Part shown: piece after piece, positions 36,350 to 45,891 of the stretch
Position numbering within the stretch: position 1 is the stretch's first letter
How the letters are laid out: each line of letters opens with the position of its first letter
Assembly: GCA_002269645.1 (NCBI GenBank)
Contig: NIVC01001956.1
Location: forward strand, 22,663-86,662
Reading direction: 5' to 3'
Source of the DNA: Macrostomum lignano
Lineage: Eukaryota
DNA length: 64,000 nucleotides
Made by a program: the position numbers and the translations under genes
Notes under the pieces: generated by a model
Database searches by the model: none
Told to the model about the DNA's origin: nothing
Seen by the model: only the letters and a program-made list of their open reading frames with translations

Positions 36350-36590
36350 TGCTTCCAGTAAGCCTTGGCATATCAACAATTCCCCTTAAGCCTTGACATC
36401 CCAGCAATTCCCCCCGTAGGCCTTAACATCTCAGCAATTCTCCCCGTAAGCCTCGACGTCTTAGCAATTCCCCCAATAAGCCATGACATCTTAGAAATTT
36501 TCCCACTAAGCCTTGAAGTCTGAGCTTTTCCCTATAAGCCTTGACATCCCAGCAATTCCTCCCATTAGCCTCGATGTCTCAGCAATTCCC
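36350..36590. repeat. Degenerate ~29-30-bp tandem repeat (CAGCAATTCCCC..TAAGCCTTGACAT)
   Basis: About 8 imperfect copies overlapping the 3' end of ankyrin copy 1. Confidence 0.75.
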
Positions 36591-37780
36591 CCAGCTGTAA
36601 GCTCCAGAGATGCCGGATTCTGCTGGCTCGCCCTCAGCTGAGCGATGCGGTGGCTCAGGTAGTCCACCGGTCCTGGCAACTAGGCCTACCGGTATGAGAT
36701 CGGAGTCATTCCGCCTCTTCACGCTGTCAATGAGCCCTTGAACCATATGGATAGAAGCCGCTGATTCCAGACAGTCCGACAAGGCATAATGCAAGTGGTT
36801 TAACCGCTCGCTCGAGCAGAGACAGAGTTGAGTAGGCGCTGCATCAAAGTCGATTAGCAACGAGATTAAGTCGGCCCGACGCATTTGCAGGCACAAAAAC
36901 AAAGGCGTCTGCAAAATTTAATTTTTCATTGCCTTTAATTCCCTGAAGACAAACTAATTCCTTTTCTTCTTTCGCTTATTTACCGTAAAAGCGGGTTGAA
37001 ATAAGCTTCTTGAATGCTCGGCAGTTTTAATAAGAACAGGAAGGGAAACTCACTTGCCCAAGCACATTGACCAGATTCACTGTGGGCATCAGGTTTTCAC
37101 GCCAAATCAATTCACAAAGCAGACTTTCTATTGAGTGTCTTGACTGCTTTTGCAACAAAGCGATGTGAAGCGGTCTGAAATGAAAATAAAAGAATTAAAA
37201 GAAACGATATAAACCTATTGAAGCAACTCAATTTTGACAATCCAACAAAGTTTTAAACAGGAACAACAACGCAGCATAAAATTAGACTCGGAGCTTGGTT
37301 GCCTTCTGATGCAGAAATCATGAGAACGCCTGTCGAACTACATGTACCTGCTAACGACGCATCTATCCCGGCATCGCCGTTGAAATAAACGCTCGACAGA
37401 CTGCAAGCTCCCCTAGTTAACACCCTGAAGTGCTGCAACCGCACCTGTTGCTGCCGATCCTCTCCACTCCGTTGCAAGATTTTCGGCGTCATGCCACCGT
37501 AGCGGCAGCTCACTGGGTTACTCGGGTTCGAGGTGTACTCGTAGTTCGGCTGCGCGTGCTGCTGCAAGCCCGAAGCTGAAGCTATCCAGCCAGCCTGCAT
37601 AGGCTGCGAACACCCAGTTGAGTTCCTCTGCTTTCTTGCTCGCTGCTTTGGATCCTGCTTACCTTTTGACAGGATTTCTTCCTCTTCGATGGGGTTGTCT
37701 TCATTTGAAGTTGGCCTTTCGTCTATAGCATGTCCAGTTTCTAGTATTGACGTTGGATCGTCGACTGCCTTATCTGACAT
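36579..37780 (-). pseudogene. Ankyrin-repeat gene copy 1 (IkappaB-like), disrupted
   Basis: Exons 37215-37780, 37054-37174 (121 nt, PLHIALLQ...NLVNVLGQ) and 36908 downward (TPLFLCLQMRRADLISLLIDFDA). In-frame TAA at 37253-37255, plus a frameshifting deletion near 36670 relative to copy 2. Confidence 0.75.
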
Positions 37781-37837
37781 GGTCAGTGTAAGTTTTCTAT
37801 GCTATACCTGTCTCTGATTACGTTTTGTGGCACTTAT

Positions 37838-38312
37838 CTGTGGGACGTATGTTCTGTGGGGCGTATGTTCTGTGGGGCATGTTCTATGGGCGTATGTTCT
37901 ATGGGCCGTATGTTCTATGCGTATGTTCTATGGGGCGTATGTTCTATGGGGCGTATGTTCTATGGGGCGTGTATGTTCTATGGGCCGTATGTTCTATGGG
38001 GCGTATGTTCTATGGGCCGTATGTTCTATGGGCCGTATGTTCTATGGGCTATGGGGCGTATGTTCTATGGGGCGTATGTTTTATGGGCCGTGTGTTCTAT
38101 GGGCCGTGTGTTCTATGGGCCGTATGTTCTATGGGCCGCATGTTCTATGGGCGTATGTTCTATGGGGCGTCTGTTCTATGGGCCGTATGTTCTATAGGGC
38201 GTATGTTCTATGGGGCGTATGTTCTATGGGGCGTATGTTCTATGGGCCGTATGTTCTATGGGCCGTATGTTCTATGGGCCGTATGTTCTATGGGCCGTAT
38301 GTTCTGTGGGGG
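37838..38312. repeat. 16-17-bp minisatellite (GGGCCGTATGTTCTAT)n
   Basis: Directly visible. The overlapping VCSMGRMF/YVLW ORFs are repeat translations. Confidence 0.95.
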
Positions 38313-42852: not shown

Positions 42853-43237
42853 TTTTCACCTGGAAGTAAAAAGGCTAATCAAAGCTTTTCTGCTTTTCGA
42901 TTCCCAGTCTCGATGCTCCGACGCCAGATGATTCAACTCTATTTTGGACATTTTATACCCGAGTTTCTGGGGAATGACATTGCTTTGTATTGCATGAAGC
43001 ACTAAACTGGTCGGCCTTGTATTTACGAGCCTTAATTTTTGATACATTTATATACAGCATTTTGTTGTTCTGGGGCAGAAACACATGGGTGTACATTTCC
43101 AGGTGTGCAAAAGAAGTGGAAATTGTACACCATGCGCTACACAATAGAAGTTTCAACATTCCTGATACTGTAAGAAAATTTAATTATTATCAAAATATCC
43201 GCGTTGAGCTTTTAATATTTCATTCGATAGAGCATCC

Positions 43238-43485
43238 ACAGACAGACAGACAGACAGACAGACAGACAGACAGACAGACAGACAGACAGACAGACAGACA
43301 GACAGACAGACAGACAGACAGACAGACAGACAGACAGACAGACAGACAGACACAGACAGACAGACAGACAGACAGACAGACAGACAGACAGACAGACAGA
43401 CAGACAGACAGAGAGACAGACAGACAGACAGACAGACAGACAGACAGACAGACAGACAGACAGACAGACAGACAGACAGAGAGAC
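43238..43485. repeat. (GACA)n microsatellite
   Basis: Directly visible. The TDRQ/SVCL ORFs are artefacts. Confidence 0.98.
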
Positions 43486-44151
43486 ATGTGTGCCAGCCTT
43501 CCCCATTTGCGCAATATAGTGTTGAAAAGTTACCAGCCGTAATTATCATTATTTACGAGCGGAATATTAAACTTTTAAATATATTTAAGGCGGATAACAG
43601 CGCTAAGTACGAGGATGTTATTAAAATTATCACACTAATTAGTATTTTTAGAGCATTTTTGGGAAATCTGTCAACGCTGTCGTTAAAAAATATTATTAGT
43701 CTCCATTGTAGTGATAAAAAGGCTTACTGCGGCATCCGTGTGCTGCCTATTGTAAAATATGTACAAATATTTCCTTATATGATGGTGTAATGATTATCAG
43801 AAATAGAAACGCCTTTTAAGAGAAAAGATACTCGAGTAGTTGATAAAAACGGATGAACAAGTTGCATAAATATCTAATGAATTTCGAACAGTATTAACAG
43901 TGATGATAGAAGGCAGAAAAAGTGTCGGTGCAATGTTTACGACAAAAGTTCTCTGTGAAGAAGCTCAGCCCTAGGGCAGCGTTGAGTTCTAATCATGAGC
44001 ACATCGGGCACCAATCAGAAGCTAATAGTCGAGTCCAGCTTCAACTCGAGGCAACATTCGGCAGATGCTGTTCTTCAGCCACTGCATCGAAGCGAGCAGC
44101 TCAGCTGAGTCCGGCTCCTGCTGGGTGGCACTCAGCTGGAGATGCGGTGGT

Positions 44152-45891
44152 TCAGGTAATCCAGTGGCGTCTTCCTAAAGCGGTCCTTGGCATGAAGACC
44201 AATGAGGTCGGACTGGTGCTTCTCGCCACGCAGCTGATCAAGCATTGCACCATCTGAATGGCAGCGGTGGTGTCCAGACACTTCGCAAACGCGTAGTGAA
44301 AGTGATTCGTGCGCTCGCTAACGCAGCAGCACAGCTGAGTCGGTCCCGCATCAAAGTCGATGAGAAGCGACAGCAGGTCAGCGCGGCGCATCTTCAGGCA
44401 CAGCGAAAGCGGCGTCTGCAGAACAGAGGAGAAAAAGCGATTGAAAGTTTGAAGGCAGCAGTTGCTAGTTTCCACAGCAACGTTAGTGCGACCAAGTTCA
44501 ATCTCTAAGAACACGTTGTAAAGAAAAGTACTTATACCAGTAGCGCTGTCAAGTGCATTGATCTTTACTATACAGACTAGCAACAAGTTCCTTTATCGTT
44601 AGGAGGCAACGAATGAAAGAAAAATACTTAATTTCCCATAAAAAACTCTTTGTGAATTTTGTAATTTTTAAAAATGAATAGCCCAACAATTTTAAACAAA
44701 GCGCCTCTCAACTCACGTGCCCACAGATATTAACCATGTTGATTATTGGTAGCAGCTTCTTCTGCCTTTTGAGGTTGCAAAGCAGAAAGTCGACTGCCTC
44801 ACGTGGTTGACTTTGCAGTACGGCCGTGTGAAGCTGACTGCAGTGCGAGCAGGTGTTTACACAGGTTTATGAGATTGCTATCGTGTGCTGGAAACCATGT
44901 TATCTGATTTCATGGGTCAGTAATAAATTTTGCTTACTTTGCCACATCAATAATCTACATATAGCTGGGAGACTAAACGCGAGGACGCTATTTTCAGCAA
45001 CATCTTCAGTCTGCTGCAGGCCGCGTGCAGTAGAAATGCATGTACATACATTGGGCCGGGTAAACATCAGTATCATTCGAGTAAATAGCTGCTATCATAT
45101 TTCGAGCTGCTTCTGAGCAACGAGAAGCTTGTTGGTATGAGATGATACAAGCTAGGTTAATATTCCTTAGGACTTCTGTAACCGACTAAATCTACTGACA
45201 AAACAAAACCAGTGTGCTAAAAACGCAAGACTTACCTATTGAAATTCTCATCAACAAGAATAGATTGGGGATTGAGCTTTTTAATTAGTGCCAGGCGCGT
45301 TTGCTCAGACACTGGCGCCTTGCTCGGACCAGAGCGGGACTCGGCAGCCGGCGGTGCCGGCGGCGGCGGTGGCGGCGGTGGTGGTGGCGGCTGCGCGGGG
45401 ACCATCATTGGAGCGTTGATGATGATGTCCGCCCTGCTACCTGGCATGCAGGCGCCTCCGCTCGGTGGTCCCGGATCCGTAGGTCCGTTCAACAGCTCCA
45501 GCAGGCTTTCAAAACCTTCGCCCGTGTCGTCGAAGCCTTGCGCCTGCGGTTGCGTACGCTGAATTAGCTGCTGCTGCTGCTGAACAGCTCCTTCCCACTG
45601 TTGGTAGGGCGAATGCATGCCTCGCCCTTGTGGTGTTACCGGGCTTGAAACATGCTGCTGCTGCTGCTGCTGCTGCTGCACCAGCTGGCTGGGTTGCAGC
45701 GCGCCCGAAACGGAAACTCCCGACCGGGGCCGCGCCGGCTGCCTCAGTCGCTCGGCTGCTTTGCCGGACTGTTCCAGGCGCTTTGGTTGCTTGGTGTAAA
45801 GATGCTGCACAAACTCCGCATGCTCCTCATCGGTTATTTGCAGCTCACCAATTCCAGCTTCCAAATTCGATGATGTACACGCATCAGACAT
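44152..45891 (-). CDS. Ankyrin-repeat protein copy 3 (poly-Q/poly-P N-terminus); 1-nt frameshift in the last exon (truncation or assembly error)
   Basis: Exons 45236-45891, 44717-44837 (121 nt, QLHTAVLQ...INMVNICGH) and 44415 downward (TPLSLCLKMRRADLLSLLIDFDA). After ~44225 the homologous KHQSDLIGLHAKDRFRKTPLDYLN lies in a shifted frame. Confidence 0.75.

Follow-up and report, generated by a model that had tools for sequence, protein, structure and literature searches.

A tandem cluster of degenerate ankyrin-domain genes with birth-and-death turnover in Macrostomum lignano

Two described groups of ankyrin proteins were used for comparison with the locus reported here. Ankyrin domains of the IkappaB family consist of six to seven consecutive repeats that wrap a Rel-homology dimer, and the classical IkappaBs and Cactus carry an N-terminal DSGxxS signal-response degron and a C-terminal PEST region. 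The adaptors ANKRA2 and RFXANK are small proteins in which a disordered N-terminus precedes four to five C-terminal ankyrin repeats; they bind short linear motifs. The locus is a cluster of ankyrin-domain genes in a stretch of 64,000 nucleotides from Macrostomum lignano (assembly GCA_002269645.1, contig NIVC01001956.1, positions 22,663 to 86,662 of the forward strand), called the window in the following. All coordinates are window positions unless a contig is named, and minus-strand features run 5' to 3' from high to low numbers. A first annotation made from the letters of the DNA, here called the sequence-only reading, had described four IkappaB/Bcl-3-like genes in tandem. The cluster comprises two working genes (copies A and C), one pseudogene (copy D) and one relic (copy B). 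It belongs to a family restricted to M. lignano and turns over by birth and death, with A and C live and transcribed. The proteins form an uncharacterised family within the ankyrin proteins, which are a very well-known kind. We consider it likely that this account is correct in its anatomy, in its evolutionary history and in placing the proteins with generic ankyrins and not with IkappaB.

The homologous units were arranged head to tail on the minus strand, from 45891 to about 36579. Using the copy A protein as query, tblastn detected exon 3 of copy C with E = 3e-50 and exon 3 of copy D with E = 7e-30. No copies beyond A to D were found by tblastn of the window. The tandem arrangement of homologous minus-strand units was thereby confirmed. 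The count of four genes was not, as A and C are live, D is a pseudogene and B is a relic of about 29 nt. Functional genes of the family have three exons and encode proteins of about 260-390 amino acids, with a low-complexity N-terminal half and a C-terminal ankyrin half. The exons of the two working genes were as follows.

45236 to 45891, minus strand: copy A exon 1, 656 nt, ATG at 45891, phase-2 GTAAGT donor after ...VDENFNS
44717 to 44837, minus strand: copy A exon 2, 121 nt, QLHTAVLQ...NMVNICGH, flanked by CTGCAG and GTGAGT
44022 to 44415, minus strand: copy A exon 3, from TPLSLCLK... to a TAG stop, with two 1-nt gaps
41122 to 41672, minus strand: copy C exon 1, 551 nt, ATG at 41672, phase-2 GTGAGT donor after ...ADEKLNS
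40832 to 40952, minus strand: copy C exon 2, 121 nt
40348 to 40746, minus strand: copy C exon 3, including a TGA stop

The first exons of A and C start with ATGTCT and end in D-E-x-x-N-S at a phase-2 GT(A/G)AGT donor. A middle exon of 121 nt with AG/GTGAGT flanks was present in copies A, C and D and was followed by a last exon starting with TPL. Of the exon plan that had been proposed for all four units, A and C thus show every part and D shows the middle and last exons. Copy B is without exons 2 and 3, and copy D is without the D-E-x-x-N end and its donor. Exon 1 of copy A is rich in Q, P and S. The poly-Q and poly-P tracts that had been noted in one copy were found in this one, which starts at 45891 (poly-Q at 45653-45679 and poly-P at 45349-45395; Tandem Repeats Finder, TRF). 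Its exon 2 covers the first ankyrin repeat and the beginning of the second.

Copies A and C are already in GenBank as hypothetical proteins, and UniProt names older models of both 'ANK_REP_REGION domain-containing protein'. Copy A exon 1 matched residues 1-218 of GenBank protein P0002 (Mlig002611g3) with 100% identity. The spliced product of copy C comprised 356 amino acids and was identical to GenBank protein P0051 (Mlig031663g1/g2); it was also 99% identical to the M. lignano hypothetical protein BOX15_Mlig014114g1. The Mlig_3_7 annotation was built from RNA-seq transcripts with StringTie, TACO and TransDecoder (PMC5730564). The locus was compared with two contigs of this assembly (GCA_002269645.1), NIVC01004668.1 (L001) and NIVC01003218.1 (L002), on which copies A and C alone were annotated. 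No accepted coding transcript was present for copies B and D in the RNA-seq-based annotation of L001 and L002. As the models of A and C are RNA-seq-based, both genes are transcribed and are spliced as had been predicted from the window.

L001 was 99.45% identical to window positions 47361-37883, and L002 had 96-98% identity. The pair of A and C is likewise present on a third contig, which is 86,662 bp long. Redundant contigs of the locus are expected, because the assembly contains 180 Mb of duplicated blocks at an identity of at least 95%, owing to the karyotype of the line (PMC5730564). Copy C was intact on all three contigs and copy A on L001 and L002. In the window, copy A exon 3 has lost its frame through 1-nt gaps near 44225 and 44139 and is readable only in three frames; each of the three pieces matched P0002 exactly. 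A three-way alignment over 8 kb contained only two window-specific 1-nt deletions, both in this exon. L001 and L002 differ at about 1.2% of sites, and both gap sites are among these, with T on L001 and C on L002. Since both gaps lie on such rare sites of difference, they point to a consensus error over mixed haplotypes. Judged by these alignments, the frame breaks in copy A most likely arose in the consensus of the assembly and are not biological. The single-nucleotide polymorphisms of the window change from L001-like to L002-like within 44278-43668. Both gaps lie inside this segment, which looks like a mosaic or collapsed consensus.

The remaining two units are degenerate and comprise the following parts.

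42571 to 42852, minus strand: copy B relic, an ATGTCA-initiated open reading frame (ORF) that is out of frame with ...LADENFNS and the GTAAGT donor
37253 to 37780, minus strand: copy D former exon 1, with the MSDKAV... start and the KGK..P.QRAR patch kept and the D-E-x-x-N end and donor lost
37054 to 37174, minus strand: copy D exon-2 homologue, 121 nt, family frame open (PLHIALLQ...VNVLGQ)
36579 to 36908, minus strand: copy D exon-3 homologue, frameshifted in the window

The ATG frame of copy B meets two stop codons at DENFNS, and the frame that encodes DENFNS lacks an ATG. Counterparts of exons 2 and 3 were not found downstream. Demonstrable homology to the ends of exon 1 in A and C was confined to about 29 nt around the donor (42594-42565), where the alignment score was 32-33 compared with 19 +/- 2.3 for the shuffled null. 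The UniProt entry A0A1I8G713 (P0052), an older ab initio model, joins the copy B frame to copy C exon 1 at LESGIGELQ. The possibility that copy B serves copy C as an alternative first exon was also considered. This was rejected for lack of an ATG in the frame of DENFNS and because the unit is not used in the RNA-seq-based annotation.

Copy D exon 2 had 60-68% nucleotide identity to exon 2 of A and C. In exon 3, an 11-nt-shorter version near 36693-36667 shifts the frame in the window and on L002; the exon is open on L001 and carries an extra stop codon on L002. Exon 1 on L002 is additionally split by an insertion of about 1.3 kb. Copy D as a live gene was rejected, because its ATG frame has no acceptable phase-2 donor and the good-looking GCAG/GTACAT site is in phase 1 and would bring exon 2 into a frame with a stop. 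On its sequence, copy D is best described as a drifting pseudogene whose state varies between haplotypes. The birth and death that had been proposed for the array is thus visible in its present make-up, with two genes live, D a pseudogene and B a relic. At its 3' end, copy D passes into a 30-bp minisatellite at 36355-36593 (unit GTAAGCCTTGACATCTCAGCAATTCCCCCC). A related 30-bp minisatellite was located in intron 1 of the gene for P0008 (Mlig028006g2), a distant M. lignano paralogue on a different contig (L003, about 10553-10612). Because this related copy sits on another contig, the minisatellite is regarded as a dispersed repeat and not as part of the gene family.

The C-terminal domain of the family is a true ankyrin domain, although its repeats, about four in number, are degenerate. 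Pfam Ank_2 gave consistent matches of 17.5-23.6 bits in P0008 as well as in copies A, C and D. A profile built on five members of the family, searched against the PDB, matched DARPins, ankyrin-1/2 and others with E = 1.2e-17 to 1e-5. Its best matches were designed consensus ankyrins and ankyrin-1/2, with E = 1e-17 to 1e-10. The Pfam and HMMER check recommended by the sequence-only reading therefore gave Ank_2 below threshold for single sequences and ankyrins of the PDB at E = 1.2e-17 for the family profile. AlphaFold2, supplied with a five-sequence alignment, returned a model of four helix pairs with a predicted local distance difference test score (pLDDT) of 86.8 and a predicted TM-score (pTM) of 0.79. 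The Foldseek top 50 for this model, in the PDB as well as in BFVD, were nearly all ankyrin domains with a probability of about 1.0. An earlier model from a three-sequence alignment was discarded; it had a pLDDT of 58, below 50 in the ankyrin region, and its Foldseek result was meaningless (best E = 0.35).

The four repeats occupy about 170 residues and start with NSQLHNAV, GQTPLSLC, RTNHFHYA and NRTPLDYL, compared with the canonical TPLH. Repeats 1 and 3 carry long insertions, and about 10 residues follow the last repeat. The proteins are thus short ankyrin proteins, as had been stated, with about four repeats in place of about three. With generic ankyrin proteins (Pfam clan Ank: PF12796 Ank_2, PF00023 Ank) they share TPLH-type repeats, a helix-pair solenoid and strong profile matches. 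They differ in degenerate repeats, Pfam scores below gathering, insertions and loose superposition (TM-scores of 0.4-0.57). A C-terminal SOCS box as in ASB-like proteins was rejected: the BC-box L-x-x-x-C spacing was absent by eye, and no SOCS match was obtained in Pfam. A relationship to polydnavirus vankyrins was likewise rejected, the BFVD matches being generic ankyrins, mostly of giant viruses, with some of poxviruses and phages.

The sequence-only reading had assigned the array to IkappaB/Bcl-3-type regulators, the ankyrin domains of which would bind Rel/NF-kB dimers while the Q/P-rich tails transactivate. The ankyrin fold itself agrees with this assignment, and so do the Q/P/S/A-rich N-terminal halves with their basic patch, which resemble the low-complexity flanks of Bcl-3. 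The five-member profile matched NF-kB p100 with E = 7e-7 over two repeats, and Bcl-3 (1k1a) was the 8th Foldseek match. These similarities to the IkappaB, Bcl-3 and p100-p105 group were marginal and not preferential. The p100 match was about the 24th of the profile search, far behind the generic and designed ankyrins at E = 1e-17, and Bcl-3, IkappaB-alpha and IkappaB-beta were not among the best 60 profile matches; with a three-sequence profile, IkappaB-beta had E = 1.8. In Foldseek, Bcl-3 came after ANKRA2, cpSRP43, designed proteins and TRPV1. The family has about four repeats and not six to seven. A regular expression for DSGxxS found no occurrence in copies A, B, C, D or P0008, the nearest motif being LE[SA]GIGE without serines in copy A, and no C-terminal PEST tail was seen in the translated proteins. 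No orthologue outside M. lignano was found among 1.84 billion representative proteins. The IkappaB label fails because of repeat number, match ranking, the degron and PEST results and the orthologue search. By these comparisons, the array proteins are not demonstrable IkappaB/Bcl-3 relatives. The D..N..LH.A...N..GQTPL pattern, from which the label had been derived, is how many ankyrin arrays begin, and an ankyrin N-cap motif is no evidence for IkappaB.

The literature on flatworms points in the same direction. NF-kB and IkappaB were not detected in platyhelminths (PMC4484250), p50/p105 were reported absent from Platyhelminthes (PMC11432056) and a planarian had only highly divergent Rel-homology domain genes (PMC13563047); none of the three papers covers Macrostomum directly. 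Taken together, a family of IkappaB/Bcl-3-type regulators is very improbable. Just as improbable is a variant in which these short, nuclear ankyrin proteins with Q/P-rich tails evolved independently, in a phylum that has lost canonical IkappaB/NF-kB, as Bcl-3-like cofactors or inhibitors of transcription for divergent flatworm Rel-homology or other transcription factors. If it were true, tandem birth and death would diversify regulatory tails.

The N-terminal halves were compared between the copies and P0008. S, Q, P, A, G and T together made up 47-57% of this half in A, C and D and 36% in P0008. Conserved islands were the MSD start, S-x-LE-x-G(IGELQI), KGK-x-x-P-x-Q-[KR]-x-R and TR-x-AL-x-KL, the last being a helix that leads into the first ankyrin repeat. 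The basic KGK..P.Q[KR].R patch was present in C, D and P0008 and looks like a nuclear localisation signal. From their composition, the halves are presumably disordered. Between A and C, synonymous divergence (dS) was saturated (1.4-2.3), so that the array goes back to old duplications. Nonsynonymous divergence (dN) was 0.29 in the ankyrin half vs 0.87 in the N-terminal half. The N-terminal halves thus evolve much faster than the ankyrin core, as had been suspected. The statement that the first exons are barely alignable agrees with this difference but not with the conserved islands (MSD, S-x-LE-x-G, the KGK patch and TR-x-AL-x-KL). Between L001 and L002, copy A had 1 nonsynonymous and 3 synonymous differences and copy C had 5 and 10. 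The resulting dN/dS was about 0.10 for copy A and about 0.16 for copy C, both from small counts. Copies A and C look to be under purifying selection, with which these ratios are consistent.

P0008 comprises 264 amino acids. Its gene has a phase-2 intron before PLH, a middle exon of 145 nt (121+24) and a phase-0 intron before TPL. Since P0008 shares the exon plan of the array, the family and this gene structure are older than the tandem arrangement. The gene adjoins, in convergent orientation, a gene (L003 15054-21340) for a protein of 1100 amino acids with doublecortin (DCX) and WD40/EML domains, which is 24-64% identical to ORFs of the window. The upstream neighbour of the array itself, at 51704-55836 on the minus strand, is a gene with doublecortin (PF03607, E = 5e-12) and an EML-type beta-propeller. 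A DCX/EML neighbour at both loci suggests that the gene pair was duplicated long ago as one segment.

These data also bear on a reading of the whole array as decaying junk, that is, pseudogenes or misannotated ORFs without function. In its favour, B and D are plainly degenerate, the frame of copy A is broken in the window and in a GenBank protein (P0054), and the locus is embedded in satellite-rich DNA. Against this stand the intact copy C on three contigs and copy A on two, the transcript-derived gene models for both, and dN/dS of 0.10-0.16 between contigs. The ankyrin core has been kept despite the saturated dS between A and C, and the exon plan is common to the distant paralogue P0008. Junk is hence a very unlikely description of the array as a whole, although slightly less so than IkappaB-type regulation.

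In an exhaustive HMMER search over the 1.84 billion representative proteins, no family member matching in a single stretch was found outside M. lignano. Single-stretch matches were P0001, P0002 and P0008, which represent two array proteins and one relative. The remaining matches were generic multi-repeat ankyrin proteins covering one or two repeats, with E down to 7e-12. A search of 5.8 billion clusters with copy C as query returned, besides Mlig014114g1, only Mlig002611g3 (390 amino acids, 40% identity), which is copy A. A word-based profile search including P0008 added P0056 and P0057, both from M. lignano. The lineage-specific character that had been claimed was thus upheld.

For copies A and C, a mechanism as adaptors with nuclear action can be put forward tentatively, at somewhat less than even chance. 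The ankyrin domain would act as a protein- or peptide-binding module, and the paralogues would differ in their partners or regulation through the divergent, disordered halves. The basic patch may permit action in the nucleus. ANKRA2 and RFXANK resemble the array proteins in overall layout and size. ANKRA2 (4lg6, 3so8, 3v2o) was the top Foldseek match and RFXANK was 10th and 27th, with E of about 2e-3 to 2e-2. Neither was among the best 60 profile matches, and there is no specific sequence kinship. The likeness is one of functional analogy and not of membership. A different role would be that of fast-evolving reproduction genes of testis, ovary or prostate, typical of Macrostomum-specific genes, in which the ankyrin domain serves as a scaffold in gametogenesis. 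Lineage restriction and fast N-terminal halves are circumstantial points in favour of this role, and rapid evolution of reproduction-related Macrostomum genes has been reported (PMC7336406). On the other side, the gene identifiers were found neither in the supplementary tables of PMC7336406 nor in those of the germline/neoblast re-analysis. A reproductive role is considered unlikely, if clearly less so than junk.

Several observations weigh against the account of A and C as live ankyrin genes of a family restricted to M. lignano. All Pfam matches were under the Ank_2 gathering score of 27.3, and the AlphaFold2 model depends on a five-sequence alignment that includes distant paralogues. Foldseek E-values were 1.5e-3 or worse with TM-scores of 0.4-0.6, for which reason the repeat stack is regarded as irregular. 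The disorder and the patch resembling a nuclear localisation signal are both read from sequence. The restriction to M. lignano reflects public protein sets, in which transcriptomes of other Macrostomum species may perhaps not be included. P0054 (346 amino acids, from the third contig) has the frameshifted tail of copy A, and the frameshift may be a real truncated allele. Mlig002611, Mlig014114, Mlig031663 and Mlig028006 were not found in the full texts searched, nor in the supplements of PMC5816591, PMC5730564, PMC7336406, PMC5946080 and PMC12896417. The literature searched contained no functional, expression or localisation data on the family.

Two tandem repeats detected with TRF lie between the units.

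43238 to 43486, strand not applicable: (ACAG)n microsatellite between copies A and B
37837 to 38326, strand not applicable: 16-bp minisatellite, repeated about 30 times, immediately upstream of the ATG of copy D

The window as a whole was very rich in micro- and minisatellites, at 4791-5901, 20582-21920, 17356-18222, 56616-57442 and 59230-59718. Its repeats include (AACT)~277, (TAAC)~335, a 17/36/125-bp array, a 33-bp array of 25 copies and (AGAGG)~100. Low-GC bins of strongly skewed composition and several spurious long ORFs are due to these satellites. An ORF at 1777-2268 on the plus strand encodes a CCHC zinc knuckle (PF00098, E = 3e-6) and may be a retroelement gag remnant.

The importance of the locus is modest, and no long-standing question is opened by it. 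A practical trap became apparent: in the redundant M. lignano assembly, seeming frameshifts can be consensus artefacts at sites that differ between haplotypes. M. lignano is a regeneration model in which transgenesis and RNA interference are available for tests of function. The cluster offers a small, clean case of a taxonomically restricted family on an old fold, with a conserved exon plan, fast-evolving and presumably disordered halves and visible birth-and-death turnover.

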